Virus record (IMG/VR): IMGVR_UViG_3300044797_000098
Coordinates: 342,471 to 406,470 of that record
DNA: 64,000 bases
Direction: 5' to 3' (one strand)
The notes under the pieces are model-generated. The model had not been told where the DNA came from. It saw only the letters and a program-made list of their open reading frames with translations, and searched no databases. Positions 4,738 through 63,888 of this stretch are shown one piece after another. A program made the position numbers and the translations under genes. Each line of letters starts with the position of its first letter. The first letter of the stretch is position 1.

Positions 4738-5112
4738 TCATACCAGCGTTAAATACTTTGCTAAGTTTTCTTTGCCATATATTTTCTTGTTATCGAGAGC
4801 CTTTATATGTTTGCCATCGATATAGTATTCTGTTGTTTTGCCATGGTTTCTAATAATTGCCGGACCATCATCACGATGATTGACATATCCGGATGCCACA
4901 TATTTATTGTATGTTTTTATTCCATGAGAATACTCATTAGCATAACCATCTGGTGTTCTCCAACTTTTCGAGATACCATAACCATCTTTTCTATAAGATA
5001 TGAAAAAATTAGGTAATTTTATTTCTGAGTTAATTCCGAATCGATCGGCAAGTTTATATATTTGAAACTGCGTTTCTAATACTACATATTTTATATATTC
5101 AATAGCGATCAT
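4738..5112 (-). CDS. HR(E/D)DGPA-motif phage protein with conserved LDNKKIYGKENL-KYLTLV tail
   Basis: HRDDGPA motif; C-terminus nearly identical to 35423-35692 and similar to 42148-42414. Confidence 0.8.
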   Translation of the reverse strand: MIAIEYIKYVVLETQFQIYKLADRFGINSEIKLPNFFISYRKDGYGISKSWRTPDGYANEYSHGIKTYNKYVASGYVNHRDDGPAIIRNHGKTTEYYIDGKHIKALDNKKIYGKENLAKYLTLV

Positions 5113-5115
5113 AAA

Positions 5116-6105
5116 TCAATTCTCTTTACACACATTCACATAAAAAACATTACCATCAATTTCAATCTTTTTTGCATCCTTAGGATCATCATTATATGAC
5201 ATCAGTGCAATTTCATTCGCGAGCAGTTCTTTTTTCAACTTATCTTTATACTTTACGATGACATTAGCGGGTTTTGGCATACAAAAGATTTCGATATATA
5301 CTCGATCTGTCAATTCCAATTCGAGTTCTTTACGCACATTTTGCAATGCAGACTTAAAATCAGCAATAAATCCTCTTTCCAATAACTCATCGTTCAAGTT
5401 AGTATCAAGAATGATTACCCCTGATTTATTCGATGAGGAAGCATAACCCGCTTTTGATACGAACTCAACTTCAATATCTGCTAATGTTAGATCAATATCG
5501 CACATTCTAACTGCTTCTTTGTTTTCGAGCAGTTTATACAAGTCTTTACGATCAGCAAAACTCATCTTTGCCAGTTCAATTTTCAACGCATTACCTTGCT
5601 TGCCTCGTCCAGTTTTGCCAAGATTTCTAAAATTAGGCTTCAATACCATATCGGTGAATTGATTTGTGTCTTCGACGAATACAACTTTATCAACATTTAA
5701 TTCATCGCCAAGCACATTAGCGTAATCGTTGTTCTTGCAATCAACATACACCATATAATTTTGCACTTGTTTATCTGCGAATAACACATATGCTGTGCTC
5801 AATGGTTGTCGATTACGGATTTTAACTTCCGCACGAACCTTATGTCCCATCTCGCACATATCACGAATTGACCGCATACGATAGATTAGTTCGTAATCGA
5901 TATCACCAACTGGTGATTTATTTACACTAACGATAGCGAAGTTCGGATCGTTTTGATATTCCGCCTGATATTCTTTGATCAACTGATCTGATTTATCATC
6001 AATGGAATTGAACGAGGCGAATGCAGTCCATTGCTGAACAACACCTTCATCATTTGTGGAATTATAGCGAATTGTGTATTCACGCACGGTTTTTGTTTCC
6101 CTCAA
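5116..6105 (-). CDS. Stand-alone isoleucyl-tRNA synthetase (type 2) C-terminal region, no catalytic domain
   Basis: GHKVRAEVKIRNRQPL, ELNVDKV, LKPNFRNLGK and LDTNLNDELLERG..QNVRKELELELTDRV match the IleRS2 C-terminal (DUF5915-type) pattern. No HIGH or KMSKS motif. Confidence 0.8.
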   Translation of the reverse strand: MRETKTVREYTIRYNSTNDEGVVQQWTAFASFNSIDDKSDQLIKEYQAEYQNDPNFAIVSVNKSPVGDIDYELIYRMRSIRDMCEMGHKVRAEVKIRNRQPLSTAYVLFADKQVQNYMVYVDCKNNDYANVLGDELNVDKVVFVEDTNQFTDMVLKPNFRNLGKTGRGKQGNALKIELAKMSFADRKDLYKLLENKEAVRMCDIDLTLADIEVEFVSKAGYASSSNKSGVIILDTNLNDELLERGFIADFKSALQNVRKELELELTDRVYIEIFCMPKPANVIVKYKDKLKKELLANEIALMSYNDDPKDAKKIEIDGNVFYVNVCKEN

Positions 6106-6327
6106 TCAGTCCTGTTGCATTCCAGTCTTTACCATTGATCCACTGCATAAGATTTGCAATACCAGTTAGATTTTCTACAACACCGGCTTTACGGAAGTTT
6201 TTACTTGGTTCTCTTGCTACATAATAGATATGACCGCCCCAAAATTGATCGCCCATATAATTGATAGACATTTCTCTACCATTATTTTCTTCTTCCCAAG
6301 ATATTCCGCCATCCATATCTATAATCA

Positions 6328-6807
6328 TTACAAAATCGCCTTGCTAAATTGTTTATAGTCTTTATATTGTTTAGTAATCCTATTCCAAAATCCCCACGAA
6401 TTATTTTTTCTACTACCAGTGAAAAACAATGTCCAAGGCCCATTATTTTCATCAATAAGTTCAACGCGATGAAAATCATTGTGTGTGAAAAAATTGAATG
6501 ACAATGGCTTTACAAAACGACGAGTGATTGTATCATCGGGATTGCGTCGTTCTTCCCAATAACCTTGCGTCAATACGAAACTGAATGCCCACTTTGCAGG
6601 ATGATGATGCAACAAGTATGTTTTTCCACCAACACCATCATTAGGATCAGTATCTAAATCGCTACTTCGGAAGTGGTGTAAAAATAGGTTTCCCAACTCT
6701 CTATCTTTCAATAATAGGTAATATCTTGTTAGATACGGATTGCCATCTGGTTTTGGAATTGTGATATTTGGGATATGTTCAATCAACGAACGAAGAATAG
6801 TAAGCAT
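6328..6807 (-). CDS. Phage cupin-like His-rich hypothetical protein
   Basis: PYLTRYY..LFLHHF..D..HHHP..GYWEE..FHRVEL..WTLFFTG..WGF pattern; GGAGAG RBS upstream. Confidence 0.6.
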   Translation of the reverse strand: MLTILRSLIEHIPNITIPKPDGNPYLTRYYLLLKDRELGNLFLHHFRSSDLDTDPNDGVGGKTYLLHHHPAKWAFSFVLTQGYWEERRNPDDTITRRFVKPLSFNFFTHNDFHRVELIDENNGPWTLFFTGSRKNNSWGFWNRITKQYKDYKQFSKAIL

Positions 6808-6825
6808 TGTTCTCTCCTAAAAATT

Positions 6826-7033: not shown

Positions 7034-7038
7034 TTAAT

Positions 7039-8479: not shown

Positions 8480-8481
8480 TT

Positions 8482-9438: not shown

Positions 9439-9660
9439 CTACATTAGCAATAGATATTTTTCTATGCCTTCTCTGTATTTGGAATACCAATCACATTGCC
9501 TTATATAATCTAATGGCTCGTGCCCATATTCTTTCCTAATGAAAACTATCAGTCTAACAACTTCGCGTGAAACATCTAATCTCTGTTCCTCACATAATTT
9601 AATTATTTCAGACCAAGTGTTGGTTTTACATAACTGTTTGTAATCAAGCACAATATACAA
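9439..9660 (-). CDS. Small protein related to the 28479-29642 family
   Basis: W..II...E...LDV...V and EKYLLLM tail. Confidence 0.65.
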   Translation of the reverse strand: MYIVLDYKQLCKTNTWSEIIKLCEEQRLDVSREVVRLIVFIRKEYGHEPLDYIRQCDWYSKYREGIEKYLLLM

Positions 9661-10426: not shown

Positions 10427-10434
10427 ATCTTCCT

Positions 10435-11350: not shown

Positions 11351-11773
11351 CTACCGTCCTACAACCAGCGCGCCAGCAATAATCAATACCATCCCAATAA
11401 CTTTCATCATCGTTATTTGCTCTCTGAAAAATATCGAAGTCAAAATCAATGTTATTACGATTGGCATTGTTGTTGATATAGCATACAATGTAGCAACATT
11501 ATTGCTATATTTTACGCCATATATGAATGCAAGTCCTGCCATCGTTGCTGATAGCGTTGCAAGCATTGCCCACATCACGCCAGTTATATTGAATGGTTGT
11601 GCTGAAACTTTCGTATTCAATATATGTAAATATATTGGCAACAAGCATATTCCAACACAACAATTTACAATGTGGATTTGGAATGGATGTATGTGTTTTA
11701 CTGCAAGTTTTAAAAAGAAACTCCAACATCCATATCCTATAATAGATAGGATTATTAGATATTTGCTATTCAT
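11351..11773 (-). CDS. EamA/DMT-family small membrane transporter
   Basis: About five hydrophobic segments; P..T.IL..FFRE.IT..KVIG.VLII.G tail typical of DMT/EamA. Confidence 0.8.
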   Translation of the reverse strand: MNSKYLIILSIIGYGCWSFFLKLAVKHIHPFQIHIVNCCVGICLLPIYLHILNTKVSAQPFNITGVMWAMLATLSATMAGLAFIYGVKYSNNVATLYAISTTMPIVITLILTSIFFREQITMMKVIGMVLIIAGALVVGR

Positions 11774-11774
11774 A

Positions 11775-12488
11775 TCACGACCACAAGTATTTTCTAATTT
11801 TCAGCAATCGAATAAGCATCTCTTCCAATTTATCTTCGTTTCTTTTATCGATGTTTTTTAATTCTTCCCATAGTATTTTTGTGTATGGGGATTTGGATTT
11901 TTTAGCATTGTGCCATTTTGTTAATGCTTCGTCGCCTTCTTTACATTCGAGTTTTCGACCCTTATTCCACCAATTATAGATCGCAATGATTTCATTATTC
12001 TGATCTAATTGATGTTGCAAGTGCGGTTCTTTTGCAATATCTTCTTGCGTCGGAAAATACATATGCACAAGTTGTTCTTCTACGAAGTTAGTCAATAGAT
12101 TGAACATCGCATATATCATTTTGGTATCCGTATCAATATATCCAGATCGATAGCAATCAACATCGAATTGCTTATTGCGTTTTGGCTGGCGAAGATCGAG
12201 CATATGATCTCGACGAATAATGAAAGATAGGAACCAGTATTTGAACTCTCGAAGTTTCCATCCAATTAATTTTAGCCAAGTATGATAAATGAACTCGGGA
12301 AGCGTTGAGGCGAAGAAAAACTTTACGGGGTAAGTCTTTTTGAGATAGTTATAGTAATAAGCCCAAGTTTTTTCACCATGATCGTCTTCTTCCTCGTCAT
12401 CCCAATCCATTGCCATAGCATTGCAGTGCTTCGACATTCCTAATTGTTTAGGATTGGGGAACTTGAAAATCTTTTGGAAGTATAGCAT
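11775..12488 (-). CDS. Hypothetical phage protein
   Basis: 237-aa ORF ending LIRLLKIRKYLWS. Confidence 0.75.
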   Translation of the reverse strand: MLYFQKIFKFPNPKQLGMSKHCNAMAMDWDDEEEDDHGEKTWAYYYNYLKKTYPVKFFFASTLPEFIYHTWLKLIGWKLREFKYWFLSFIIRRDHMLDLRQPKRNKQFDVDCYRSGYIDTDTKMIYAMFNLLTNFVEEQLVHMYFPTQEDIAKEPHLQHQLDQNNEIIAIYNWWNKGRKLECKEGDEALTKWHNAKKSKSPYTKILWEELKNIDKRNEDKLEEMLIRLLKIRKYLWS

Positions 12489-13116: not shown

Positions 13117-14676
13117 TCATAGTAATAGCAACAATTTTTCTAATTGTTCCACTGTTTTAGCATCGAATAGTTTCGCCCCATACAATTCAGTTATACAGTG
13201 AATGTCGATTGCTAATCCGTTCTCCATTCTAACCCTGCTAACAATGGTTTTAAAACCTGTGTTTTCCAACTCCCATTCTATTCTATATGTCGCCCCAACT
13301 GTGCGGAATGCATACCCATTCCATTGACTAATATCGCATTCGTGGCATTTAGAAAATGAACCACCAAAACCATTATCCCATATCAATGGCTGTTTGCAAC
13401 ATATACAATTTTTGTTTATCATAGTAAAATCAATAGTTTCTCAATTTGTTCCACTGTTCTAACATCGAATAATTTATACCCAACAAAAGACTTAATCGCT
13501 TTTGGTGAGCCACTGTGTCTTGAAAAAATAAATGTATGATTGTTTGACCACTCAATATCATATGAATATATTTGTCTGATCGAAAAAAGAGTGTAATGAT
13601 AAATATCACATTGATTACAATACCTTACCAAGGCGAATGGATCCAGCGGTATATTACAAGCGATACAATTCATACGCCTCATATCAAAATCAACAATTTT
13701 TCTAATTGTTCTTTCGTCTTTATATCGAACAATTTCCAGCCATCGATTACTTTGATTTCATCTGGATACCATTGTTTTATGGATTCGAACCACTTATCCT
13801 TGAGTATGGCAGTTATTGGATCTGCACTATATTCATCCCTATTCCATTGGATCACATAATTCTCTATGTATCTTCCGCAATCATTACCATCATAATTCAT
13901 ATCACCAAAATATATTATATCACATTCATCACATTTGTTTGTGGTTTGTGTTGCGTTTCGTGTTGGTTTCTTGCAAGATATACATCTCATATTAATATAA
14001 ACAATCTTTCAATCTCTTCTGGCGTTTTAGTCTTTGCCAATTTCAATATCATATCAATATGATTTATTGTTTTTACCCAAAACAATTTTAGACCATCGAA
14101 TGATATAATCTCATCCCATATCTCTCTTGTGCTTTCCGGACTATCATTAATATCTTCCTGAATAACTGTTCGTATAGGTTCTCCATCGTGCCATAGCCAA
14201 GTTATTTGTAGATATTCTACTGATCGTTCTGCTTGCCCACCACCTTTTAGATAGGCAATATCGCAACTATAACACCAAGTATAACGATATTTTTCATTGA
14301 ACTCAATTTTATTTCCACAACATATGCAATCAAAACTCGTCATCGTCATCATCAATCCCACCACCAGTATTATCTTCCTTTGTTCATCTGTTAGTGATTG
14401 AAGGAGCCCCGGAGCATTTGCTATTTTCTCTACCATATCGTCATAATGCTTTTTGAACTCTGGATTTTTCATTTGTTCATCGAACCATTTAGCGAAGCCG
14501 GTTTCGTCTTCTTTATCTTCTTCCACTTCTTCGAGCAGTTCTCGCTGTTCATTCTTTTGACCACCGCGAGGTGCGTTCTTTGATTTCATTGGTGCCATTC
14601 CTGCCACACGCGAGCGCGCTGACATAACATTGGAATTGCGAGGAACGGATTTGGTTTTCTTTTTATTTTTTGACAT
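13117..14676 (-). CDS. Four tandem paralogs with N-terminal CxxC..CxxCD knuckle and KLF..T.E..EKLLIL tail (13117-13422, 13419-13682, 13679-13990, 3' half of 13987-14676)
   Basis: Direct comparison of the four translations; ATGA-type overlaps between them. Confidence 0.85.
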
Positions 14677-15879: not shown

Positions 15880-16581
15880 TTATGGTTTCGTGCTAACCTT
15901 TTTGATTGGTTTCATTTTCTTTGTTGGGGTTGGAACTGGATTTGCTGGCATTGGAACTGGAACTGTTTTTGTTCCACTGCCACCAATATATTGTCCTGAT
16001 CCTGCTGGCGGTGTAGCAGAAATACTTTGCGTTGGTTTAGTTGTTTTCAATGTTTTCAGTTGATTTACCGCATTCTTCATCTTCTCTTCGAGCGTTTTCT
16101 TTGCTTCCTTTTTCACTGTTGGCTTGGAAGATAGATCAATTTTCTTCGGTGTATAACCGATGCTCTTATACATATCTTCTCTTGGGAACCTATAATACTT
16201 TACGTTATCTTGTTCTGCGTTTTCTGGTTGTGATATATTATCACGCACCCGAATGATTGCGTTTCCATTCTTTACATCTTTACCAATTAGCCACACTGCT
16301 TTTTGCAGCACATAATCTTTGCCCGGTGCGCTGTGATCGAATGTGCTTGGCATATCCCACATAGCATCAATCTCTGCGAGGACAATAAAAACATCCGTTG
16401 GATCAAGTGATTTAGCAATGTTTTCCATATCGGTTAAATTTAAATCACCAGCACCAATTCGCTCGCCCGCACCATTATACCAGCCAGCATTTTTTATTAT
16501 GCTGTTCCAGCGCATTTGGTTATTAGATAGACCGAATGCTTTGCATTTGAGATCGCCGAACATTGATTTTGTGAGTTTCAT
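15880..16581 (-). CDS. Hypothetical protein with Pro/Lys-rich tail
   Basis: 233-aa ORF overlapping the gltX stop. Confidence 0.75.
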   Translation of the reverse strand: MKLTKSMFGDLKCKAFGLSNNQMRWNSIIKNAGWYNGAGERIGAGDLNLTDMENIAKSLDPTDVFIVLAEIDAMWDMPSTFDHSAPGKDYVLQKAVWLIGKDVKNGNAIIRVRDNISQPENAEQDNVKYYRFPREDMYKSIGYTPKKIDLSSKPTVKKEAKKTLEEKMKNAVNQLKTLKTTKPTQSISATPPAGSGQYIGGSGTKTVPVPMPANPVPTPTKKMKPIKKVSTKP

Positions 16582-18005
16582 AGTTGTGCCTTTATTCTAT
16601 TCAATACTGTTTCTTTTCCGAGCACGCCCATTACTTGGAATAGTTCAGGGCTTTGAGTTCGGCCGTATAGTGCCACACGAGTGCTTTGTCCAACATCGCG
16701 GATTGTTAGATTGTTTTGTGTTAGCCAATCATTCGTTGCTGTCCGAAGATTGGTTTCCGTCCAATCATTTACGGATTGTAGGAATGTATTGAATGCGGAT
16801 AGTTTCGTTTTGGCTTCCGGTGTTAGTATTTTTTCTACTGCGGATTGGTCAATGGAGATGTCGGAACGGAGAACTGGCTCTAACTCTACGCTGGCTTCCC
16901 GAAAATTTTTTGAACGCGTTCTGACGAGATTAGTTAGGGAAGCAAGACGATCGCGGGAAACATCAAGCCCCAATTCTGCAACGAACGGATGTAAGTGTTT
17001 TGCATACACATCGTCAGGCGTAAGCGTCGATGACTTTAAGTGTTCATAGTTAATGACACTGAATTTCTTGAAATCATATTTGCCGTCATTACGACCCACT
17101 GCTTCTAATGAAAACTTTTCGATCAGTTCATCAATGCTAAATACCTCTTGGGACTTCCATCCCCATCCAAACCTTACAAGATAATTTAAAACTGCATTTG
17201 GAGTAAAACCTAATTGCCTAAATTCAGCAACGCTTACTGCACCATCGCGTTTCGAGAGCTTCCCGCCATTGCTATTTAATAATAATGGCAGATGACAATA
17301 TGTCGCACGATCAATTCCTAATGCCTCGTATAACATCAGTTGGCTGGGTAGATTTTTTAAATGGTCAGATCCCCTGATAATATGCGTTATATGATCTATA
17401 ACGCCGTCATCTATGGCGTTTGCGAAGTTGAAGAGAGGGATACCATTTTGTCTAAAAATTACGAAGTCAAAATTTTCCTTGTTTGGAATTGCTCGCTTAC
17501 CAAACGCTATATCATTAAATTCGATTACACCATCTGTTGGAGCTTTGAAACGAACAACATAATCTTTGCTTAATTGTTTCGTTATATTTCTACAAGTTCC
17601 GGGATACTTCCAAGGATTTTTAGGATTTTTCGCAAGCGCTTCTTCGCGTTGCTTATTTAGATCTTCCTCGGAACAATAGCATAAATAAGCTTTACCGCTT
17701 GCTATTAGTTCTTCTGCATACTTCTTGTATATTGGAAGGCGTTCCATTTGTGTATAAACACCAGCAGGCTTATTATTCGTTCCATAACCCATCGTTGGGA
17801 TTAGTCCGAGCCATTTAAGATCTTCAAGTATTTTATCTGCGCCACCTTCAACAACACGAGCCTGATCGGTATCTTCTATTCTTAATAGGAATTCGGCATT
17901 ATATTTTTTGCTGAATAACCAATTGAACAAAAAACTTTTTGCATTTCCGCAATGTAAGGTGCCACTGGGCGACGGAGCACATCTAACACGAAGATTATTT
18001 GACAT
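16578..18005 (-). CDS. gltX: Glutamyl-tRNA synthetase
   Basis: RVRCAPSPSGTLHCGN (HIGH region), LRIEDTDQAR, YLCYCS, ITHIIRGSDHL, KLSKRDG (KMSKS), and C-terminal RVALYG..SPELF anticodon domain. Confidence 0.97.
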   Translation of the reverse strand: MSNNLRVRCAPSPSGTLHCGNAKSFLFNWLFSKKYNAEFLLRIEDTDQARVVEGGADKILEDLKWLGLIPTMGYGTNNKPAGVYTQMERLPIYKKYAEELIASGKAYLCYCSEEDLNKQREEALAKNPKNPWKYPGTCRNITKQLSKDYVVRFKAPTDGVIEFNDIAFGKRAIPNKENFDFVIFRQNGIPLFNFANAIDDGVIDHITHIIRGSDHLKNLPSQLMLYEALGIDRATYCHLPLLLNSNGGKLSKRDGAVSVAEFRQLGFTPNAVLNYLVRFGWGWKSQEVFSIDELIEKFSLEAVGRNDGKYDFKKFSVINYEHLKSSTLTPDDVYAKHLHPFVAELGLDVSRDRLASLTNLVRTRSKNFREASVELEPVLRSDISIDQSAVEKILTPEAKTKLSAFNTFLQSVNDWTETNLRTATNDWLTQNNLTIRDVGQSTRVALYGRTQSPELFQVMGVLGKETVLNRIKAQL

Positions 18006-20362: not shown

Positions 20363-20628
20363 TCATTGTAATATCAATAACTCATTATGTCTTTCACAAA
20401 CTGCCATCGCTTCTTCTTTTGTGTCAAACTTACAATCATCTGGCGTGCTATTGCCAAAAATAGTAATATCACTTGTACGAAGATTTTTGGTCAGAAAACG
20501 AATATTACCATTATTGACAATATATTATAATATAATTCATTTTTTACGGAAGCAACGGAATACTTATATGGCACAAACCAAGTTTCATTCCATTTATGTT
20601 GATGCTTACCTCCATATACCCATTCCAT
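20363..20628 (-). pseudogene. Frameshifted eleventh copy of the TKEEA..CERH..LLILQ family
   Basis: N-part MEWVYGGKHQHKW.. and C-part FLTKNLRTS..CKFDTKEEAMAVCERHNELLILQ* lie in different frames. Confidence 0.8.
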
Positions 20629-27431: not shown

Positions 27432-27460
27432 AATGTAAGTCTCCGTGGCTCGGCTGTCAA
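27432..27460 (-). promoter_or_regulatory. sigma70-type promoter
   Basis: TTGACA-17nt-TACATT. Confidence 0.85.
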
Positions 27461-49720: not shown

Positions 49721-49749
49721 AACCTAACCATTGGCAGAAACCGCGTCAA
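49721..49749 (-). promoter_or_regulatory. sigma70-type promoter
   Basis: TTGACG-17nt-TAGGTT. Confidence 0.7.
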
Positions 49750-50128
49750 GGTCGGCGAGAAACTTGCAAGCGACGCACACAAACTTATCACCTACATTGG
49801 GGTTCGTGTGGGGTGCTGGAAGATTACAACCTGCACAAACCTGATTAGGATTGATTATTGCTTGTTCGAACATTTCAACTGTGCATGATCGTCCAACCCA
49901 GTAAAACCAATTGATATGATCATATTCCTTGCCAATGGTAATATCTCTAACCATTGCAGTAAAATTACCATTAGTTCTATTCCAACCAGTCCCACCACCT
50001 TCCATTGGTCTTTCTTCCCAGCCCAATACAACATATCCGCCATAAAATCCTAACATCGTGGCTGGACTATTACTATATTGACATATGACCTTTGTTCCTA
50101 TTGCAACATCTTTGATGTAGGTCTTCAT
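49724..50128 (-). CDS. C..C.LPAPH..PN...F.C..CK Zn-finger-tail family protein
   Basis: C-terminus shared with 54450, 56911 and 57402. Confidence 0.8.
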   Translation of the reverse strand: MKTYIKDVAIGTKVICQYSNSPATMLGFYGGYVVLGWEERPMEGGGTGWNRTNGNFTAMVRDITIGKEYDHINWFYWVGRSCTVEMFEQAIINPNQVCAGCNLPAPHTNPNVGDKFVCVACKFLADLDAVSANG

Positions 50129-50340: not shown

Positions 50341-51450
50341 CTAGGCTAACCGTTGTTCCGTATGGTTTTCGTTTCCCGCCTTTTGCAACAATTTTACTAG
50401 ATTGTCAATCTGCATTTCCGCAAAATACTGCCGAAAACTATGAACTTTTTTTGCTCTCAATGAAAACAATGCACCTGAACATTTTGACTTCACTGCCAAT
50501 AATGCGAACGCTTTTTGTTCGGGAATGTCTTTGATGAGATCGTATTCTGCTTCGAGCGTTGCGATTAGATTGTCCAATCGCTTTTGTGCTTCATCAAACG
50601 CTGGTTTATATTCTGGGAATGCGTTCAATACTTCTGGCATTTCACCCTGACGAATAATCTCGACGATTGACTTATTGGACATCAATCCATCTTTGGCGTG
50701 ATGCAGTAATACATACTTTGGGTGCTTGATTTTTACCCTATTGAACGATCCATCGAGGACGACATATCCTTCTTGCTCCAACGGATCCATTTTATCGAAT
50801 GATGCAATGCAAGCATCGAAACTGTTCAACGGAAACTCTTTTACGATTGGACAAGGGATATATGCTTGTGCTTCTTGTGCTGTTAGTTCTTGCAATGTGA
50901 TTAGATTGCGTGCCCCAAGTAATGTTAGTTTTGGTTCTGTATATCGAACTACAACCCTGTTGTAAGGACTAACAAGTTCGAAAAAGAAACACATTCCACA
51001 ATTTGGATCTGGTAATTGATACTTGAATGTATCCCAGAATAATTGCTTGAATGTGATGCCGAAGTCATTGATTGGTGTATTGGCGTCCGGTGTTCCAGTT
51101 GTTGCAACATTCCATTCACCATAAATTGGCGCAATCGTAATTAAACTTCCATCTACTTTCTCTTGGACGCGAGCGGTATTCCAATCTATCGTTGCAGCAT
51201 TTGGTTCGCCGAGATTAAAAAACTTCGTGAAAGCAAGCGACACAACATTCCAATCATTACTTTCATCCAAAATTATACCACGACACTCACGAACAATTCG
51301 CTCGGAAAAATCACTCTCTATTTGATTATACTTGAACAAAACGAGATTGTTATATACTGAATGACGCTTTGCATCAATAGCATACTTATCCGACAACTCA
51401 TCGAATGAATAGCCAGATCGAAGGAAGTTTTGGATTACGAGGTTAGGCAT
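50341..51450 (-). CDS. T4 Rnl1-type RNA ligase
   Basis: RECRGIIL, FTKFFN.GE, EKVDGSLI (motif I), FELVSPYNRVV, EGYVV, RVKIK. Confidence 0.92.
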   Translation of the reverse strand: MPNLVIQNFLRSGYSFDELSDKYAIDAKRHSVYNNLVLFKYNQIESDFSERIVRECRGIILDESNDWNVVSLAFTKFFNLGEPNAATIDWNTARVQEKVDGSLITIAPIYGEWNVATTGTPDANTPINDFGITFKQLFWDTFKYQLPDPNCGMCFFFELVSPYNRVVVRYTEPKLTLLGARNLITLQELTAQEAQAYIPCPIVKEFPLNSFDACIASFDKMDPLEQEGYVVLDGSFNRVKIKHPKYVLLHHAKDGLMSNKSIVEIIRQGEMPEVLNAFPEYKPAFDEAQKRLDNLIATLEAEYDLIKDIPEQKAFALLAVKSKCSGALFSLRAKKVHSFRQYFAEMQIDNLVKLLQKAGNENHTEQRLA

Positions 51451-54449: not shown

Positions 54450-54908
54450 TTATTCCAAGTCTTTCAACACCTTACATGACAAACATTGAAACTTATTTTC
54501 GGGCAGATTAGGATCACCATGAGGCGCTGGAAGATTACAACCAATACACTTTCTATTTGGTGAAACAACTATCTCTTTTTTCAATTTCACTAATGTATCA
54601 CGACTAACCCATTCATAAAACATATAATCAGATGCGTTGCTTGCCATTGTATATCTTCTGGTATCAGATTTCCATTTATCAGCAGCGTTCTTAACGGGAT
54701 TTCCACTTATACCTCTTAAACCTAAGGCTTCATTAGAATGCCACCCAATACACATTTCATCAGAATAAAACTTACCAATTATATCAACTTCAACTTCATC
54801 TTCATCAAGAACAATATCACGAATAATATCTGATACCACGATATTTCCTTTGCTCTTTCTAATAAGAACTGTATCTCCTAATTGACAATGTGATATACTT
54901 ACAAACAT
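54450..54908 (-). CDS. Zn-finger-tail family protein
   Basis: SPNRKCIGCNLPAPHGDPN..FQCLSCKVL. Confidence 0.8.
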   Translation of the reverse strand: MFVSISHCQLGDTVLIRKSKGNIVVSDIIRDIVLDEDEVEVDIIGKFYSDEMCIGWHSNEALGLRGISGNPVKNAADKWKSDTRRYTMASNASDYMFYEWVSRDTLVKLKKEIVVSPNRKCIGCNLPAPHGDPNLPENKFQCLSCKVLKDLE

Positions 54909-54928: not shown

Positions 54929-56137
54929 ATGATGGACTTCACTTATCTTCTCAAAACTGCTAATGATTTCAGGAAACTTGCGGAAGAACCATATTCCAAG
55001 ATTTTCGGCGATGATTTGTTATCATACATTCTATCAGCAATAACTCCGGGCAGATTTAAAAGGGAAGAGTTTTCCAGTTATATACAAACCAATCGAACGA
55101 TGCTTAACCAGATGAAAGGCGCCATTGCTTGGAAAGGTAAAAACGAAAAAGGCGAACTTCAAGGAATAGATAGGAACAATAATTTCATTCTACTATCAAA
55201 ACAACCTAATCCGCCAAAAGATTACGATACAAGATCAATGTCATTGTTGAAAGGCGTTGGTGCCATTCCCACATTGTATTTATACACAATGAAAGAGCAC
55301 GAATACAAACCAAAAGATATAGATTATCCAAAAGAACTCGGACATTACTCATTCATAATGCAAGCGTTTTTAGAGATGTTTCCTTGGTTAAAAACCGAAA
55401 GCAACACCGAATATAAGAACAACATATTGGAGTTCGTGGAAACGAATAAGGCTAAAATAGATCGCTTACGAAGACAATTTGATTACGAACCAACATATAT
55501 GAGTTCGGGATCATCTGGCTCGACATTCGCTGTTGGTCAGCATAGGATACTAAAATTGTTCAAGGATCATTCAGAATATCAAGCAGCACAAGCAGCAATG
55601 GGAAGGGTATTCAAGGGTCATGGGATGGGGAAAACGGAAGCATATATTGATGATGCTGGAATGCTTGGAACATTCTATGACAATATCGTGTATTACTACA
55701 TACAAGAAAGAATGGTAGCATTGAATGCATTATTTGCCGATGATATGGATACCGGTGGATATATGGGAGAGATATTATGGGACATTAAGGAATTGTTCCA
55801 AAAGAACAAGCCTATATTAGAACGATTGCGCAAGATGGTTAATCATCCAAGAGCATTGGACGCAGTTAGAATGATTGCAAACCGAATGGCAGACAAGGTA
55901 AAATCAACAAGCGGTCAGAAAATTGAGCACATTGGCAATGCAATGAATGAACGCGTTGGAATAAGAAAAGATTGGCTCAATGTATTGATTGAGGATATGA
56001 TCACAAAATACATAACCGGTAGAACCGATCTGCATGCTGGCAATCTCGGAATAAGTAATCGAGGTGGTGGAAGCGTGATCTATTTTGATAGCGCATTCAG
56101 AGAAGGTAAAAATAGATCTGATATGATCAACGTTTAA
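54929..56137 (+). CDS. Protein-kinase-like (PKL fold) protein
   Basis: SSGSSGSTF glycine loop, ILKLF lysine, IQE hinge, DLHAGN catalytic loop, YFD. Confidence 0.75.
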   Translation: MMDFTYLLKTANDFRKLAEEPYSKIFGDDLLSYILSAITPGRFKREEFSSYIQTNRTMLNQMKGAIAWKGKNEKGELQGIDRNNNFILLSKQPNPPKDYDTRSMSLLKGVGAIPTLYLYTMKEHEYKPKDIDYPKELGHYSFIMQAFLEMFPWLKTESNTEYKNNILEFVETNKAKIDRLRRQFDYEPTYMSSGSSGSTFAVGQHRILKLFKDHSEYQAAQAAMGRVFKGHGMGKTEAYIDDAGMLGTFYDNIVYYYIQERMVALNALFADDMDTGGYMGEILWDIKELFQKNKPILERLRKMVNHPRALDAVRMIANRMADKVKSTSGQKIEHIGNAMNERVGIRKDWLNVLIEDMITKYITGRTDLHAGNLGISNRGGGSVIYFDSAFREGKNRSDMINV

Positions 56138-56721
56138 CGATGTCCGCCTCCGTGGCCACCGCCACCATGCCCACCACCGCCAGCATGACCACCATTGCCA
56201 GCATGTGGAGCACCAGAGTGTTGTTGTGGTGCAGTGTGTTGCTGAGGCGCGGAGTGCTGTGGTGCTGAATAATGTTGAGATTGAACATGTTGTGCGTGAT
56301 TGAACGATTGAGGATGATATCCATTACCATTCCTTGCCCAGCCGTGTTGTTCATGCCAACCGCGTTCATGATAATATGAGCCGTAATGATCGTGATACCC
56401 AGCCCAATATCCATGATGATAATAACCGCCATACCAATAACCATATGGTGAGATCCAAGAATGAAAATACCAATCATAATATACATAACCACCATTTACC
56501 ACATAATAATTACTACATACTTCTCTTTCACCCCACTGATCAACGATAACTATACATCCATATTGTGATATGCCAGTCGGGAATACTTCCGCCCCAACAT
56601 TTCCTTCAGCAACAACGCCTTCTTGTGCCTGCACTGTTGCAGCACAACCAGTCATTGCTAATCCGGTTGCCAACACCAATCCTAATAGCATTTTTTTCAT
56701 GTTCATTCTCCTTTTATTCAA
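56134..56721 (-). CDS. Predicted lipoprotein with aromatic/His-rich and Gly/His-rich tail
   Basis: MKKMLLGLVLATGLAMTGC lipobox; APQQH repeats. Confidence 0.75.
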   Translation of the reverse strand: MNKRRMNMKKMLLGLVLATGLAMTGCAATVQAQEGVVAEGNVGAEVFPTGISQYGCIVIVDQWGEREVCSNYYVVNGGYVYYDWYFHSWISPYGYWYGGYYHHGYWAGYHDHYGSYYHERGWHEQHGWARNGNGYHPQSFNHAQHVQSQHYSAPQHSAPQQHTAPQQHSGAPHAGNGGHAGGGGHGGGGHGGGHR

Positions 56722-56910: not shown

Positions 56911-57833
56911 TTATTGGTTGAGTTGGATATCTTGATTAATTTCATCTATCACCTTACACGATATGCATACGAAGTTATTCCCATTATTTGGTTGAGCATG
57001 CGGTGCTGGCAGATCACATCCAATACATTTTTGATCTGGATGCAATATAATGCTTTTCGTTATATGTTTAACCATCACATGACAAGGTATCCAAACGCAA
57101 TAATCACATTGATCATATAACGCTGCGTTCTCTGCCACGAGATATTCATCTGAATATTTGCCCCAATCTGTTAAATAATTGGAATAAAATGTCTGCATAT
57201 CATATGATGATTTTTTTACATTACTACGACTAAAAGCAACGCACCTACCTAAATTAGAACCGCCTGTATATATGGCAACAACATCACCTTCCATATAATA
57301 GCGTCTTATATCCACACCCCAAGAGGAAACTCTATGACCCTCATAATAACAAAACTTAATGCGCTCACCAATATCAACTGTGCCCATAGAAACAATATCG
57401 CTCATTGCAGTTCCCTCAATACTTTACATGATATACATTGAAACTTATTATCTTTTGTATTAGATTTCGCATGAGGTGCTGGCAGATCACATCCAATACA
57501 TTTTTGATCTGGTGATATAATCATATCAATAATTTGGACAATAAAATCTGGTGTAACCCATTTGTAATATCTAAACTCTTTGTAAGATGGAATCATTTCA
57601 TAATTATCAGAAACAGTCCATCTGTGACTATGAGACGGAATATCTCTTTGACCAAAATGCTTATATCCCTTCCACGCAATACATCTCTCACCTGTTCGAG
57701 TATAATTACCAATGATCCGAACATTCAATTCTGTAATTGGTGCTGAATAATTGATGGGGACAATACAGTCATTATATACACCGACAAGCACGTCCGTATC
57801 GAGTGCTACATCTTTTATTTGGACATGAGACAT
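56911..57833 (-). CDS. Two tandem Zn-finger-tail family proteins (56911-57405, 57402-57833)
   Basis: Both carry PDQKCIGCDLPAPHA..N....F.CISCKV. Confidence 0.85.
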
Positions 57834-58859: not shown

Positions 58860-59885
58860 TTACTGTTGTTGTGATACTTTCACGAGACGGACAACAATCG
58901 TATCAACTCGACGATTGCTTGCATCGTTTGGCTCACCCGTTGCACCGAATGCAACTGGATGTAGTGATGCAGCATCAACGCCTTGTGTGCCAAGGAAGTT
59001 TGCTACTGCATGAGCGCGATTGTTTGCGAGCACGAGATTTGCCGTGCTATCACCTTCTGCACTTGCATAACCTTCGACAACCAACATAAAACCTGCTGGA
59101 AGTTCTTTGAAGTCTGTTGCAAGTGATGTTAGCGCTGTTTGTGCTTCTGCACTAACAACGAAACTGCCCTTGTCGAATTGAACTGATGGTAGAACCAATA
59201 GTGCCGAACCATCTTGAACTGTATTGACTGGAACTGGAACTGCAACTTGTTGCATGACTGTGTGCTCTTGAACAACTGTTCGTGTTTGAACAACTGGTGC
59301 AACTGCAACATGCTTTGATGGGAAGTCGAATGACATGCTTACACCAGCAGTGCCGATGCTTGGATCTTCACGATTGAGTAGTGGTGTTTGCTTGTTTGCA
59401 GCGTTGTATGTATCGAGAACTTTGTCCCAACCAACATATACTCCGAGCCAAGATGAATGCTCTTGATTGAGAGCAAAATTAACACCAACTTGTGTCATGA
59501 ATGCTGGGTTCCAGATTGTGCCTTGTTTTCCGGCGCCCAATGAACCTTGAATGTATGGATACCAGCCAGCGTTATGATTGCCTTGGACACGAACTGTGCC
59601 ATCGAATTGCCATAGTGTGGATTCTTCGGTGTTTGGTGCCGAACGCGGTAGATATACGGATGATACTGTTGGTCCAATTGCAACGTTTGGAACGATTGCG
59701 AATAGGCCATCTACTTCACCTTGCGCACCGATATTAAAGGTGTTGCGATTTACGACGTCTGCATTGGGGGCTCGTAGATTTAATGCTGGGCCACCCTGCG
59801 CATTAAGTGTGAAATCTTCTGCGGAAGCAAAAGATGTAATTGATGCAAGTGCTAATGTTGCAAGAACTGTTAATGTTTTCTTCAT
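58860..59885 (-). CDS. OmpA-family outer membrane protein
   Basis: Signal peptide MKKTLTV..ASA, beta-barrel-like N-domain, V.F..GS..VEGYAS.EG....N..LA..RA.AV..FL..NRRVD. Confidence 0.88.
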   Translation of the reverse strand: MKKTLTVLATLALASITSFASAEDFTLNAQGGPALNLRAPNADVVNRNTFNIGAQGEVDGLFAIVPNVAIGPTVSSVYLPRSAPNTEESTLWQFDGTVRVQGNHNAGWYPYIQGSLGAGKQGTIWNPAFMTQVGVNFALNQEHSSWLGVYVGWDKVLDTYNAANKQTPLLNREDPSIGTAGVSMSFDFPSKHVAVAPVVQTRTVVQEHTVMQQVAVPVPVNTVQDGSALLVLPSVQFDKGSFVVSAEAQTALTSLATDFKELPAGFMLVVEGYASAEGDSTANLVLANNRAHAVANFLGTQGVDAASLHPVAFGATGEPNDASNRRVDTIVVRLVKVSQQQ

Positions 59886-59948
59886 TGTGTTTTTCTTTCT
59901 TTGTTTTAGGTTAGTTAATTCAGAATAAGTTTCTACTCTGCCCGACAC

Positions 59949-59994: not shown

Positions 59995-61374
59995 TTACAC
60001 TATCGCTCTTTTACGAATGTTTTCGAGAGTATCATCCACCAATAACTCTCCGTTCTCATATACGGTTCGCATTACTGATAACGGACATTGAATATCATTA
60101 TCAGTCAATCTAATTGTTTCAAGTTTTCCATTACGATTAATTAGATCAAGACGACCTGCTTTGCTTCGTTTTCCATGATCTGTAATTGGATCTTTGAAAA
60201 CATCAACTTGCTTGCCATCAACAATAGCGCTACTACATTTCATAGCGAACTTATTGGTATCACGGTTATGTTGCTGCAATAACGCACCACCCATACCGAA
60301 TGCAACATTAGATGCGCTATAACCATTAGCGAGCAACTTTTCAAGAATGATAGCAATCATTCCTTCATTAATACCATCACCCTGAATAATACGAACATGA
60401 TTCAACACACGATATCCTTTTGTATTGATTGTATGTCCAAAAGATTCATCGAGTAATTGCGCTGTTTTCAAAACAACATCGGGAGGATGACCGGAGTCTG
60501 GACGAATAATAACCGTTGCTCCGCTATCAATAACTTCGCCTTTCAACTCGCTACCCCAATACTTACTGATAGCATTCCATAAATCATAACTATCACTAAC
60601 CACCGCTACAAGAGCACCGGGCTTCGCGAACTGTTTTAGCATATTACGATATGCATCACACTCTCTATCTCTACCCCAACTTGTAATTGATGAATGTTCT
60701 GCTGCCGAGATAGAGAATGCTGACATATCTATATGATAGAAATCATTAGCACATAAAACACCTACATCTGTATCACTTCCCATGAAGTTAACCAAGTGTG
60801 ATGCTCCACCAATCATTGCTGATTCTTGACTGGATACACCCCGACTCCCAAAATCATGTAGTTTGAATGGTAATTCTGCTTCTGTATTATCTGCTGATTT
60901 ATCGAGAGCAGCCTTGATTAGTTTCTTGATTCTCCAACTGATTGTCGCAACATTGGTCGGATACCACACGCGAAGCAACGAGGTCTCAATCCAAGAATAA
61001 ATCCAAGGAACTTTCGTATCTGTTAATTCAACTGTAATCAGTGCATTGTGCGATGGAACAACTGTTCCTTCTGGAACCGCACGAATGCGAACTGGAATCT
61101 TACCACCAAGATCTTTGGCGATATACATCCATCCATCGTAATTGAATACTCCCATATGAGCCTTGAAAAACTTATTGGCTCGCTCGACTTCATCAACTGT
61201 GATACGATGAGTTAGGTATTCTTTGAGATAGTATTGCAATCCGAAGAATACTGTTTCTGGATGCTCACCTCCACGTGATTCAACATAACCGAATAGGCTT
61301 GTTGTATTAGGAGGATATTGTAAATAGTGGCTTGATTTATAACTGTCTGTGTCGAATATAATGCTGTATTTCAT
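59995..61374 (-). CDS. nadV: Nicotinamide phosphoribosyltransferase
   Basis: TDSYKSSHYLQYP, LHDFGSRG, AAEHS, VVSDSYD, IRPDSG, IIQGDG, FGMGGALLQ. Confidence 0.97.
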   Translation of the reverse strand: MKYSIIFDTDSYKSSHYLQYPPNTTSLFGYVESRGGEHPETVFFGLQYYLKEYLTHRITVDEVERANKFFKAHMGVFNYDGWMYIAKDLGGKIPVRIRAVPEGTVVPSHNALITVELTDTKVPWIYSWIETSLLRVWYPTNVATISWRIKKLIKAALDKSADNTEAELPFKLHDFGSRGVSSQESAMIGGASHLVNFMGSDTDVGVLCANDFYHIDMSAFSISAAEHSSITSWGRDRECDAYRNMLKQFAKPGALVAVVSDSYDLWNAISKYWGSELKGEVIDSGATVIIRPDSGHPPDVVLKTAQLLDESFGHTINTKGYRVLNHVRIIQGDGINEGMIAIILEKLLANGYSASNVAFGMGGALLQQHNRDTNKFAMKCSSAIVDGKQVDVFKDPITDHGKRSKAGRLDLINRNGKLETIRLTDNDIQCPLSVMRTVYENGELLVDDTLENIRKRAIV

Positions 61375-61420: not shown

Positions 61421-61433
61421 CTTACTGTTTGTT

Positions 61434-62459
61434 TCAGTTGCCATCATCGTTATTGATGAAGTTGTAAATTATATGCCAATGATCCTCAAAAAACTCTGAA
61501 CTCCTCGTATAATACTCTGCAAGAGGAAGCCAAAAGGCTTTGTCTGCGTCGGAATCACCCTTCACAAGATTCAGGGCACCAATTCCAAGATTCAATTTGA
61601 ACGCCTGAGTAATTGTTCTTCCTCTAAGTGAGCGACGAGGATGATCGAATGTTTTTTCCCCTTTAATAGCAGCGAACAATGTTCGCTTATCGAGATCGAT
61701 GCTTGTTTCTTCTTTTAGTTCTCTAATTGCTGCTTCCCTGAGAGTTTCATTCTGTTCAACGAATCCACCCGGAAGAGCAAGCAATCCTTTACCATACTTA
61801 GCACGACGTCTAACAAGTAAAATATGACCTGATTTAATTACTACTGTATCGACTGTTTGGAAGGTAGGCGGAAACGGGGCTCCCTCCCATGCCGACTTAT
61901 ATTCATTCAATTCATCAAAACTATCTTTGAGATATGAAAACTTCTTGGAACGTTTAAACTCTTCCAACCAACGAGCAACGTTCTCTGGAACGTATTGTCG
62001 ATACGAAACATCATGAGTAAAATACAATTCACGAATACCAGTGGCATGTAGTTTATGTTGCGTCTTATAGTTAATGAACTCCCAATCAGGGAATGAATCA
62101 AGGTAATAAGAAGTGATATCTGACTTATGTCCAACGAGAGCAACATGCTTAGAACGATCTGTGATATCGAGAACTTTTTGTTGAATCTCAATTAGCCAAG
62201 TGTTCTCATTGTATAGATAGTCTCGAATAGGAAGAACTATAATCCTATCTTTTTGTTCTGGGGTTAGAACTGACTCAATAATATCGTGTCGCTCTCTCGA
62301 CGAGAACGGATCACGAGGATCGGATGCTTTATCATGCGAACCAACAATAAGAATTACCTTATCACCAATGGATAGGGCAAGATTAAGAAGTTCCATGTGA
62401 GCATTATGGAATGGCTGAAAACGCCCAATAACAATCGCATATTCGTAATCTAATTTCAT
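61434..62459 (-). CDS. natV: Bifunctional NMN adenylyltransferase / Nudix hydrolase (NadM-Nudix)
   Basis: IGRFQPFHNAH; Nudix box GGFVEQNETLREAAIRELKEET; RGRTIT; FEDH. Confidence 0.95.
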   Translation of the reverse strand: MKLDYEYAIVIGRFQPFHNAHMELLNLALSIGDKVILIVGSHDKASDPRDPFSSRERHDIIESVLTPEQKDRIIVLPIRDYLYNENTWLIEIQQKVLDITDRSKHVALVGHKSDITSYYLDSFPDWEFINYKTQHKLHATGIRELYFTHDVSYRQYVPENVARWLEEFKRSKKFSYLKDSFDELNEYKSAWEGAPFPPTFQTVDTVVIKSGHILLVRRRAKYGKGLLALPGGFVEQNETLREAAIRELKEETSIDLDKRTLFAAIKGEKTFDHPRRSLRGRTITQAFKLNLGIGALNLVKGDSDADKAFWLPLAEYYTRSSEFFEDHWHIIYNFINNDDGN

Positions 62460-62577
62460 TTTGACTCTCCGTCGTTAGTTAGAAGTAAATCCCCTCTCTG
62501 GGGATGCAAGAGAAACTACCTTGCAAGTAGATGCTGTCTTATGCCCATAATGTAAGTCCCGCTGTGCAGCCTGTCAA
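62457..62577 (-). promoter_or_regulatory. Promoter (62549-62577) and natV leader motif
   Basis: TTGACA-17nt-TACATT; ATCCCC-AGAGA-GGGGAT..GAC-GGAGA-GTC-AAA-ATG. Confidence 0.75.
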
Positions 62578-63363
62578 GACCCACGCCAACAAGTTTTCAT
62601 CTCAACAATTCACTCAATCTAATAAATCTCAATAACTCTTCATCGCTTGGACGATGGTCATAATCTTTTACCGACTCGCCTCTATACCATACACTGGCAG
62701 TGTCATACTCTCTAACAATATCTAATCCATCACATATATCATACCACCTATCGGATAGATCGTCATACAACGTATATTTATGATCTTCTTTATGACATCG
62801 TTTCCATTCCCTGTCATTGGTCAAAAGATCTTTACATATAGGACAATAATGTTCTTCGTCTAATAATTCAGACATTTGCTTTGAACAGTATTTCTTTTGG
62901 ACATTCAGGGTTATTCTTTTCAACAAAATACATTAGATACATATCACCCATGCAAGCACCATAAGCAAGTATCTTTCTTCCCTCTGGATGATTTGCAATA
63001 CGACGATCGTATTCTTTAAACTTCGTGATATCAGCAGTGAATAGTTTCCCATCGGGTGCCATTACTTCGAGAATGTTTCCATTGAGATTTACAATGGCAT
63101 CGGGAAGATCCCAGGCGTATTTTGATGGAAGATTTTCTGTATCTATATGATGATAGTAATCCGTCATCATTGCGTCAAGGCTTGGATATCCCTTTATTCC
63201 AGCGGTTTTTTCGATCCAGAAACCAAGGTCAGTGGCATGCAAGCGGAATGCAGTTCCGTCAGTTAGGACGAACTTTGCGATTGCTTCCGCTGCATTTGGC
63301 GGTTCAATGGCAGCGATTGTCTTACCTTCGAGGAGAGATTGGAGTTCTTTGAATGCGTTATTG

Positions 63364-63797
63364 TTATTTGCCATTGTTATCTCTTTTGATTATCTTACCA
63401 CAACGAACACATATATCATGAACATAAATTAGATTAGTAGATGCGTTCTTTATTGCATCTGCTAATTCATAGATCGAACAGCCAGATGCATTATTAAACT
63501 TAACATTATTACCATTATGTTTTTCATCATAACGAGGCTCGAACTTATGGACATTATCTTCGCAAGATTTAAACCATAACATTATTCATTCTCCTTTATA
63601 TCAATTCTATCCACAACATCTCCGCAATGAACACATATATCATGAACATAAACTTTGCGAATATAATAATCTCGCGTAAATCCTTTGTATAATTTATCAG
63701 TATAGGTTTTCAATGCTCCGGGGATTTCTACCTCATCATATCGGGCTTCGTATTTGTGCTTACCCGTAAAACTTACGCATTGATTTATCATTGTCAA
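63364..63797 (-). CDS. Tandem paralog pair of small Cys/His proteins
   Basis: Both have C....HK(F/Y)E.RYDE..YVHDICV.CG. Confidence 0.8.
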
Positions 63798-63888
63798 TCC
63801 TCTATTTCAATAATAGATATGTATCAATTTTCTTTTCATCAAAATACATAAAACCTTTTAATGCGAAAACAAAATTACGATCTTTGAT

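Follow-up and report, generated by a model that had tools for sequence, protein, structure and literature searches.

Identification of a shared C-terminal tail on unrelated phage proteins

Why should many small proteins that have nothing else in common end in the same short hydrophobic sequence? This question arose from a 64-kb stretch of DNA (hereafter the window), which constitutes the last 64 kb, positions 342,471 to 406,470, of the 406,470-bp record IMGVR_UViG_3300044797_000098, a soil jumbo phage from peat or rhizosphere metagenomes whose portal is 34% identical to that of Bacillus phage G. In the initial annotation of the window, made from sequence alone, more than 20 small proteins from four families and a few singletons were noticed to share a hydrophobic C-terminal tail, which was interpreted as a portable address tag such as a docking motif for one hub, a degron, or a packaging or localisation signal. 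The observation is confirmed, since every listed tail is present on the minus strand where it had been placed, and it turned out to be larger than described: the phenomenon is genome-wide, with about 85 rather than about 25 proteins, which fall into about 50 BLAST-unrelated families or singletons rather than four. In the whole genome (designated G000), 75-85 of about 646 ORFs, or about one in eight proteins, end in [ED]-x-φ-[ED]-K-[YL]-[LM]-φ-L-φ-stop, all of them on the minus strand and with a median length of 93 aa. The conserved module is also longer than first described, as it comprises a 12-13-residue amphipathic helix, often with a T/S-x-E-[EQ] N-cap, and its last residue is partly dictated by the ATGA stop/start overlap with the next gene.

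Within the window, all tailed genes are on the minus strand and many are arranged in tandem. The family designated F2, with DUF6745/MORN-like repeats in the gene at 4738-5112 (124 aa, tail ...GKENLAKYLTLV), is further represented at 35423-35692 (89 aa, tail ...GKENLTKYLTLV) and 42148-42414 (88 aa, tail ...GKEKLEKVLLLI, 16.4 bits), the first two ending in KYLTLV and the third in EKVLLLI. The family F0 includes the gene at 9439-9660 (73 aa, tail ...GIEKYLLLM, 20.4 bits) and four tandem genes within 28479-29642, namely 28479-28763, 28757-29065, 29065-29355 and 29355-29642, with the tails EKYLVLI, EKYMLLC, EKYLMLL and QKYMMLL. They are followed at 29646-29762 by a 3' remnant of a fifth F0 copy (...ASEVDKYLMLV), whose 5' part is replaced by a 130-bp exact repeat (29728-29857). 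Four F3 genes occupy 13117-14676: that at 13117-13422 (101 aa) has a CxxC...CxxC N-terminus and the tail ...EQLEKLLLLL, followed by 13419-13682 (87 aa, ...EQIEKLLILL), 13679-13990 (103 aa, ...EQLEKLLILI) and 13987-14676 (229 aa, ...EEIERLFILI). The family F1, with tails of the RHY[KR]LLILQ type, had been counted as 11 copies, but consists of a tandem array of ten intact genes of 85-102 aa at 20637-23423 (20637-20930, 20940-21221, 21230-21517, 21514-21822, 21786-22052, 22063-22326, 22320-22577, 22585-22866, 22876-23142 and 23154-23423), all ending in ...ERH[YH]xLL[IL]LQ/C, while the 11th copy at 20363-20512 is only a 3' remnant (...CERHNELLILQ) with stops upstream. A singleton gene at 44625-44927 (100 aa) ends in ...MEKLKKLMVLE (13.6 bits), and a short ORF remnant at 63802-63906 ends in ...EKKIDTYLLLK.

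C-terminal enrichment and selection at the protein level

Absence of C-terminal enrichment over the AT-rich background, or full-length homology of the families, would have argued against a portable tail, and both points, raised in advance, were examined. The 5-mer [KR][YLF][LMIKR][LIVM]L occurs 74 times in called genes, and 58 of these occurrences lie exactly one residue before the stop. Using an 8-residue PSSM with a threshold of >=10 bits, 75 of 646 C-termini score, as compared to only 10 of 124,552 internal windows (8e-5), an enrichment of about 1,400-fold. Among ORFs in unselected frames, 5 of 1622 score, and three of those are real genes missed by the simple gene calling used. In contrast, in two related phages with 64% portal identity, designated G001 (472 kb) and G002 (221 kb), 0/749 and 0/274 C-termini score. 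Tail genes lie only in the small-gene accessory regions and never in the 110-220 kb region of large and structural genes.

At the sequence level, acidic residues occupy positions -10 and -7, Lys is found at -6 in 60/75 tails (Lys or Arg in 67/75), and positions -5 to -1 are [YL][LM][LIVM]L[ILVM]. The last three residues are [LIVM]-L-[ILVMKQA], with Ala being rare and occurring only at -1. Leu at -2 is present in 75/75 tails, yet is encoded by five codons. Mean nucleotide identity of the tail between pairs is only 54%, with third-position identity of 40% against 60% for positions 1+2, so selection acts on the peptide. The tail is the best-conserved 7-residue window in F0 (128 sequences) and F1 (25 sequences), and all but 4 of the 119 F0 hits and all 21 F1 hits keep it.

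The tail resides on unrelated carriers

With tails removed, hhalign comparison of eight families gave probabilities under 10% for all 28 family pairs, and when tails were included only the last 10-18 residues aligned. No Pfam family was found for any of 81 tailed proteins. The AlphaFold model of the F0 protein encoded at 28479-28763 (pLDDT 92.4) has three strands plus four helices, with the tail at helix 84-91 plus 3 residues, whereas that of the F1 protein encoded at 21230-21517 (pLDDT 88) has a beta sheet plus one C-terminal helix (78-94) that contains the tail. The two predicted folds differ, and neither has relatives in PDB or AFDB. The F2 repeat domain has more than 7,000 homologs, but among the best 120 only 7 carry the tail, and in this set the widespread domain bears the tail only in this phage lineage; these 7 are ~50% identical to the F2 proteins of the window in the tail-adjoining region, and one of them is the F2 paralog of G000 itself. 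Families are essentially all-tail or no-tail, with one two-member family pairing a tail protein with a degenerate tail. The tail is therefore portable and is not left over from full-length homology.

Comparison with known C-terminal signals

Nonpolar C-terminal residues act as degrons in bacteria (ssrA-type tags; Parsell, Silber and Sauer 1990), and with such degrons, recognised by ClpXP/ClpAP/FtsH/Tsp, the tail shares a short nonpolar sequence, restriction to the extreme C-terminus with a free carboxylate and transferability between proteins. However, it is genome-encoded on about 85 proteins, is longer, forms part of a helix and ends in bulky Leu/Ile/Val/Met, or in K/Q/A, rather than in small Ala-Ala, and tail-dependent degradation would be an inference by analogy. 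A basic residue followed by a Leu-rich core of 4-5 residues also recalls the DnaK (Hsp70) substrate motif, such as the model peptide NRLLLTG, and the phage encodes a full-length DnaJ and a second J-domain protein. The DnaK motif, however, is not position-specific and disfavours acidic flanks, while the tail combines Lys at -6 with E/D at -7 and -10. A complex prediction with phage DnaJ (residues 100-323), E. coli DnaK (residues 389-607) and an F0 protein returned no answer. C-terminal docking tails of AAA+ partners and adaptors (HslU ...SRFIL, proteasomal HbYX, SspB XB motif ...LRVVK) similarly place basic or aromatic plus aliphatic residues at the very C-terminus for insertion into pockets of a protease or unfoldase, but sit on one dedicated protein, usually after a flexible linker, and are not spread over dozens of unrelated small proteins.

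The beta-clamp binding motif (QL[SD]LF / QLxLxL, often C-terminal) is a Leu-rich hexapeptide shared by many otherwise unrelated clamp clients. In the tail, Gln is replaced by Lys or Arg, the hydrophobic residues are contiguous rather than alternating, and no PF02768 match was found in the 406-kb genome, although a host clamp cannot be excluded. The T4 capsid-targeting sequence also gives several unrelated small phage proteins a common destination, but is N-terminal, found on a handful of proteins and cleaved at φ-x-E by the prohead protease, while the tail is C-terminal with an x-φ-E-K pattern. Poxvirus ankyrin-PRANC and other viral F-box adaptor families are large, lineage-specific expansions of proteins with variable target-binding N-terminal parts and a constant C-terminal element that plugs into one host machine. 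PRANC is a folded domain of about 40-50 residues with a known partner (Skp1), whereas the shared element here is 12-13 residues long without an identified partner, the variable parts are unrelated folds and the host is a bacterium.

A common recognition handle as the favoured explanation

The interpretation in the initial annotation is only partly supported: a portable tail under protein-level selection is upheld, while its functional half (docking motif, degron or packaging signal) remains an inference. The analysis itself establishes that the tail is real and strictly C-terminal, that selection acts on its amino acids, that it is the most conserved segment of the families examined, that it sits on different predicted folds and that it is absent from the related phages. 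The module, specific to one phage lineage, has been attached to, or has evolved on, about 50 sequence-unrelated families of small accessory proteins (about 85 genes, 12% of the proteome), whose genes sit in tightly packed, translationally coupled minus-strand arrays of this phage-G-like jumbo phage. What is inferred is that such a constant element on variable domains, with conserved solvent-facing charges (E/D at -10, E/D at -7 and K at -6) next to the hydrophobic end, is most simply a common handle read in trans by one partner, whose identity is not established, and a probability of about 0.5 is assigned to this reading. The most likely class of partner is machinery that reads nonpolar C-termini, meaning a host AAA+ protease or chaperone, in which case the tail would be a shared degron or delivery tag. 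A link to proteostasis in the clade is suggested by the two J-domain proteins and by a more distant tail-bearing relative that encodes a ClpP among its tail genes. However, the DnaJ and the MoxR/VWA pair also occur in the tail-less relatives, and searches of the phage genome revealed no ClpP, Clp ATPase, Lon, S41 protease, HSP70, Cpn10 or beta clamp. The partial setting of the last residue by the ATGA overlap also counts against this reading. Furthermore, in both monomer models the tail is an ordered helix end with pLDDT about 88-90, which, on helical order and pLDDT alone, fits a packed structural element better than a free peptide and hence weakens the idea of the latter.

Among the alternatives, a structural cap without any partner is unlikely but ranks next. 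In this view, the tail is simply the last helix closing the hydrophobic core of very small domains, shared because new genes in these arrays are born by replacing or extending the 5' part of an existing gene while keeping its 3' end and the coupled start of the next gene. The ordered placement of the tail in both models, the three 3' remnants retaining only the tail (20363-20512, 29646-29762 and 63802-63906), the ATGA overlap with the next start in 40% of tail genes as compared to 15% of other small genes, and the use of the most AT-rich codons (K, Y, L, I), which makes the tail cheap to evolve in this genome, are consistent with it. On the other hand, core packing needs a hydrophobic pattern but not Lys at -6 or acids at -7 and -10 on unrelated folds, the tail is more conserved than each family's own core, related phages with the same genome style have none, and 54% nucleotide identity argues against recent cassette spread. 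Less likely still, the Leu-rich helix ends might pair as an oligomerisation zipper, giving homo-oligomers, mixed assemblies or condensates, since five consecutive hydrophobic residues cannot all be buried by one small domain and a heptad-like stripe exists at -12, -8, -5 and -1; yet high monomer pLDDT was obtained without a partner and 12 residues are short for a coiled coil. A nucleic-acid signal, such as a promoter, a coupling element or a recombination linker that is only incidentally translated, could be suspected from the enrichment of TGA stops and ATGA overlaps and from the preference of codon -2 for a purine in the third position, but is largely refuted by the free use of synonymous codons, conservative L/I/V/M substitutions and the low third-position identity, and sigma-70-like sites are not enriched.

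Two further readings remain doubtful. The tail might be a substrate handle for C-terminal modification by an R2K-clade ATP-grasp ligase (genome 319,765-320,520) and a Peptidase_S51 (320,870-321,643), which by analogy with cyanophycin synthetase/cyanophycinase or the tubulin tyrosination cycle would add residues to the C-terminal carboxylate and remove them. Both enzymes are present in G000 and in every tail-bearing relative where that region was seen (designated L067, L098 and L099), are absent from the tail-less G001 and G002, and are flanked and separated by tail genes. R2K enzymes are predicted to ligate amino acids to protein side chains or C-termini, and R2K.2 occurs in phages (PMC4431377). 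However, this co-occurrence rests on very few independent lineages, 431 of 646 G000 proteins also lack a G001 homolog, and R2K.2 also occurs in phages such as Myrna and RSL1 (PMC4431377), whose C-termini lay outside the present comparison. Alternatively, the tail might target small proteins into the capsid for co-injection, as a C-terminal counterpart of the T4 sequence, since the cargo is small and diversified, as expected for injected anti-defence proteins, and the capsid of a 400-kb phage has ample room. Against this, tail genes lie far from the structural module in arrays of early-gene style, about 85 different cargo species would be unprecedented, and no protease-site pattern of the T4 type is present.

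Physiologically, a handle read by proteostasis machinery would give this whole gene class a common fate, such as timed turnover or hand-over. A more speculative possibility, considered improbable though not excluded by the evidence, is that the tailed proteins form an adaptor library, in which about 85 rapidly diversifying small domains would each bind a different host or defence target, while one constant C-terminal plug would couple all of them to a single machine, either a host AAA+ protease or chaperone, or a phage enzyme such as the lineage-specific R2K ligase/S51 peptidase pair. This would be the bacteriophage counterpart of poxvirus Ank-PRANC or F-box effector families.

Genomic context of the tail genes

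The window covers bases 342,471-406,470 of a 406,470-bp IMG/VR virus record with 35.6% G+C, which CheckV rates as 95% complete and whose DNA is found in peat and rhizosphere metagenome runs. The portal protein is 34% identical to that of Bacillus phage G, the only cultured relative found, and searches against cultured phages by megablast and tblastn gave no match for the window or for a protein of the tailed family F0. A search with the phage's aminoacyl-tRNA synthetase, made in order to identify the host, found no close cellular relative. A crude greedy ORF call gives 646 genes, of which 541 are on the minus strand, and these gene calls are approximate, since at least three real tail genes were missed. 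Tail genes have a median length of 93 aa and are located at 40-55 kb, 90-101 kb and above all 250-375 kb of the genome, among other small genes, while none lies in the 110-220 kb region of large and structural genes. None of the tail genes has a homolog in the related phage G001, whereas 215 of the 646 proteins of the phage under study (G000) do.

Distribution and consensus of the tail

All the C-termini listed in the initial annotation, which described one hydrophobic tail on more than 20 small proteins, are present, and the observation thus holds, with three details requiring correction. The copy counted as the 11th of the 'RHY' type (20363-20512) is a 3' remnant, the copy ending in DKYLMLV (29646-29762) is a 3' remnant whose 5' part is replaced by a 130-bp repeat, and the one ending in DTYLLLK (63802-63906) is a short remnant. 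The 130-bp repeat (window 29728-29857, corresponding to genome 372,198-372,327) is 100% identical to a second full copy at genome 306,669-306,798, with a partial copy at genome 3,808-3,844, and contains a G+C-rich hairpin (CCCTTGCC-TAAA-GGCAAGGG). It may be a small mobile element or a terminator cassette, and in the window it replaces the 5' part of an F0 paralog.

The main finding is that the tail is genome-wide. Reading back from the stop, the consensus is [ILVMKQA] at -1, L at -2, [LIVM] at -3, [LM] at -4, [LY] at -5, K (R) at -6, [ED] at -7, [ILF] at -8, [ED] at -10 and [YTL] at -12, and the module is often introduced by T/S-x-E-[EQ]. The 5-mer [KR][YLF][LMIKR][LIVM]L occurs 74 times in called proteins, and 58 of these occurrences lie exactly one residue before the stop. 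An 8-residue PSSM, trained on one representative per BLAST family, scores 75 of 646 C-termini at >=10 bits but only 10 of 124,552 internal windows. C-termini of ORFs in unselected frames, which serve as the AT-rich codon background, score 5/1622, and three of those are real genes. Absence of enrichment over this background and full-length homology of the carriers had been set beforehand as the two conditions that would overturn the proposal, and the first of them is not fulfilled.

Related genomes were scanned in the same manner. Two related phages with portals 64% identical score 0/749 (G001, 472 kb, complete) and 0/274 (G002, 221 kb). However, close relatives do carry the tail, namely G003 and L075 with portals about 91% identical, as do the more distant contigs L067 and L068. 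A 30-column tail-only profile searched against 1.84 billion representative proteins gave no hit at E<=0.001, as expected for so short a model, and of 11 hits of an exact DNA pattern in IMG/VR only one close relative was genuine, the rest being due to chance.

Selection acts on the peptide

Leu at -2 is present in 75/75 tails and uses five codons, and in 69% of gene pairs the codon at this position differs synonymously. The 24 nt encoding the tail are on average only 54% identical between pairs, with third positions 40% identical and first plus second positions 60%, while substitutions stay within L/I/V/M. Selection is therefore on the peptide, and the codon analysis largely refutes a DNA-level signal. 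A scan for sigma-70 promoters gave a count equal to the shuffled expectation. There is, however, one nucleotide-level overlay, since 40% of tail genes end in nnATGA and overlap the next start codon, as compared to 15% of other small genes, which suggests tight translational coupling within the minus-strand small-gene arrays. TGA stops are enriched as well (31/58 against 180/646). This explains why the last residue is often encoded by nnA, such as ATA Ile, CTA Leu, GTA Val, AAA Lys and CAA Gln.

The tail is carried by unrelated proteins

With the last 13 residues removed, BLAST groups the tailed proteins into about 10 small families plus 46 singletons. Families are essentially all-tail or no-tail, the one exception pairing a tail protein with a paralog whose tail is degenerate. 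Profile-profile comparison of eight families without tails gives probabilities under 10% for all 28 pairs, and with tails only the last 10-18 residues align. AlphaFold2 with family alignments predicts confident and different folds for two families. F0 (window 28479-28763) has pLDDT 92.4, with three strands and then four helices, the tail being helix 84-91 plus three extended residues, while F1 (window 21230-21517) has pLDDT 88, with a beta sheet followed by one long helix 78-94 that contains the tail. Neither model has a significant relative in PDB or AFDB clusters, only a weak DUF551-like resemblance being found for F1. Family F3 has a CxxC...CxxC N-terminus, and family F2 consists of DUF6745/MORN-like repeats. 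This F2 repeat domain has more than 7,000 homologs in public data, yet only 7 of the best 120 carry the tail, sharing ~50% identity and the same linker with the F2 proteins of the window, and one of the seven is G000's own paralog. Full-length homology of the families is thus not observed, and the tail is an add-on.

In metagenomes F0 has 119 hits, all but four of which end in the tail (usually [EQK]-K-Y-L-x-L-[ILVM]), and all 21 F1 hits end in ERH[YH]xLLxLQ/C. In both family alignments the tail is the most conserved 7-residue window of the protein. Scans of 10 and then 81 tailed proteins against Pfam and PHROGs returned nothing usable, with no family covering any of the 81. A second paralog family of 134-164 aa (window 49724-50128, 54450-54908, 56911-57405 and 57402-57833) has its own shared Cys-rich C-terminal motif (...N-x-F-x-C-[IL]-S-C-K-V-L/I...), which is unrelated to the Leu-rich tail.

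Search for a partner

Searches of the phage genome for HSP70, ClpP, Lon, S41, Clp-type AAA_2, beta clamp and Cpn10 as candidate hubs all found nothing. The phage does encode a full-length type-I DnaJ and a second protein with only a J-domain (genome 222,927-223,898 and 164,528-164,905), without an Hsp70 of its own, and a MoxR-like AAA+ with a VWA-metallopeptidase partner (genome 303,254-308,215), a pair already noted in jumbo phages (PMC7824862). Both DnaJ and the MoxR pair were considered as hubs, but they also occur in the tail-less relatives and hence are not specific. The single complex prediction, combining the C-terminal part of the phage DnaJ, the E. coli DnaK substrate-binding domain and an F0 protein, returned no answer and is no evidence either way.

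A pair that does track the tail is an R2K-clade ATP-grasp ligase plus a Peptidase_S51 (genome 319,765-321,643, outside the window), separated and flanked by tail genes. It is present in G000 and in every tail-bearing relative where that region was seen (L067, L098 and L099), and absent from the tail-less G001 and G002, although this sample of lineages is too small for the pair to be more than a lead. R2K enzymes are predicted to ligate amino acids to protein side chains or C-termini (PMC4431377). In the more distant tail-bearing relative L068 (JGI 3300080028 contig, 195,786 bp), a 202-aa ClpP (PF00574, E 8e-22) is encoded at 11558-12166 among arrays of F0 tail genes, in a region syntenic with window 5-12 kb, whereas the genome of the phage studied here lacks it. 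Next to the arrays, a tandem array of five paralogous proteins of 467-548 aa, about 35% identical to each other (window 2-3994 and genome 338,647-343,452), gave no Pfam family, only low-confidence Atlas structures and no family or structural lead. Its orthologs sit next to tail genes in L067.

Other genes of the window include NAMPT next to an NMN adenylyltransferase-Nudix fusion (59995-61374 and 61434-62459), which together form an NAD+ salvage pair of a kind reported to counter host defences that deplete NAD+. A class-I Glu/Gln-type aminoacyl-tRNA synthetase (16578-18005), a T4-type RNA ligase (50341-51450), a protein with an OmpA-family domain (58860-59948) and an aminotransferase-like protein (27457-28482) are also encoded. 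An ORF at 56134-56721 has a Gly/His-rich low-complexity C-terminus (...HAGNGGHAGGGGHGGGGHGGGHR) and overlaps another ORF in a different frame.

Interpretation and significance

What the analysis establishes is that the element is real and strictly C-terminal, that it is selected as a peptide, that it is portable and lineage-specific, and that it sits on about 12% of the proteome. Its service as a common handle, its recognition in trans and any role in degradation or delivery are inferred from sequence and from predicted models. The interpretation in the initial annotation, that the tail is a portable address tag such as a docking motif, a degron or a packaging or localisation signal, is therefore supported only in part, namely as to portability. 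The hydrophobic stripe at -12, -8, -5 and -1 can pack on the carrier domain, as the models suggest. However, the conserved Lys at -6 and acids at -7 and -10 on unrelated folds, together with the invariant Leu at -2 next to the free carboxylate, are hard to explain by folding alone and point to recognition in trans. The chemistry resembles nonpolar C-terminal degrons, Hsp70 substrate cores and docking tails of AAA+ partners. Hence, a shared degron or delivery tag for proteostasis machinery that reads C-termini is ranked first, with a probability of about 0.5 for a tag read in trans, while a degron specifically remains a tentative and less likely form of this reading.

Among the alternatives, a structural cap inherited through 3'-preserving gene birth ranks highest, although it is considered unlikely, and an oligomerisation zipper is less likely still. 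A substrate handle for the R2K/S51 pair and a packaging signal are about equally improbable, and a nucleic-acid signal is the most remote possibility in view of the codon analysis. A membrane anchor is rejected because the tail is too short and has acidic flanks, and a T4-type protease site is rejected because the register is wrong.

Short C-terminal tags are a known device, but one tag shared by dozens of unrelated small-protein families of a phage, and restricted to one clade, was not found in the literature searches made here. If the reading as an adaptor library or that of C-terminal modification holds, it would be a new kind of phage system, and if the tail couples variable binders to a protease or an enzyme, it would be the first proteome-scale adaptor system described in a phage. 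A transferable tag of 7-13 residues would also become available as a tool. The phenomenon may not be unique, since proteome-wide terminal motifs are easy to miss with family-based annotation and C-termini of other large phages could be scanned for them systematically. Most genes of jumbo phages are small ORFans that give no handle for study, while here about 12% of a proteome appears to declare, through one short peptide, that it shares a fate or a partner. If this partner is found, dozens of unknown genes would gain a common mechanism at once, whether that is turnover, delivery, modification or assembly.
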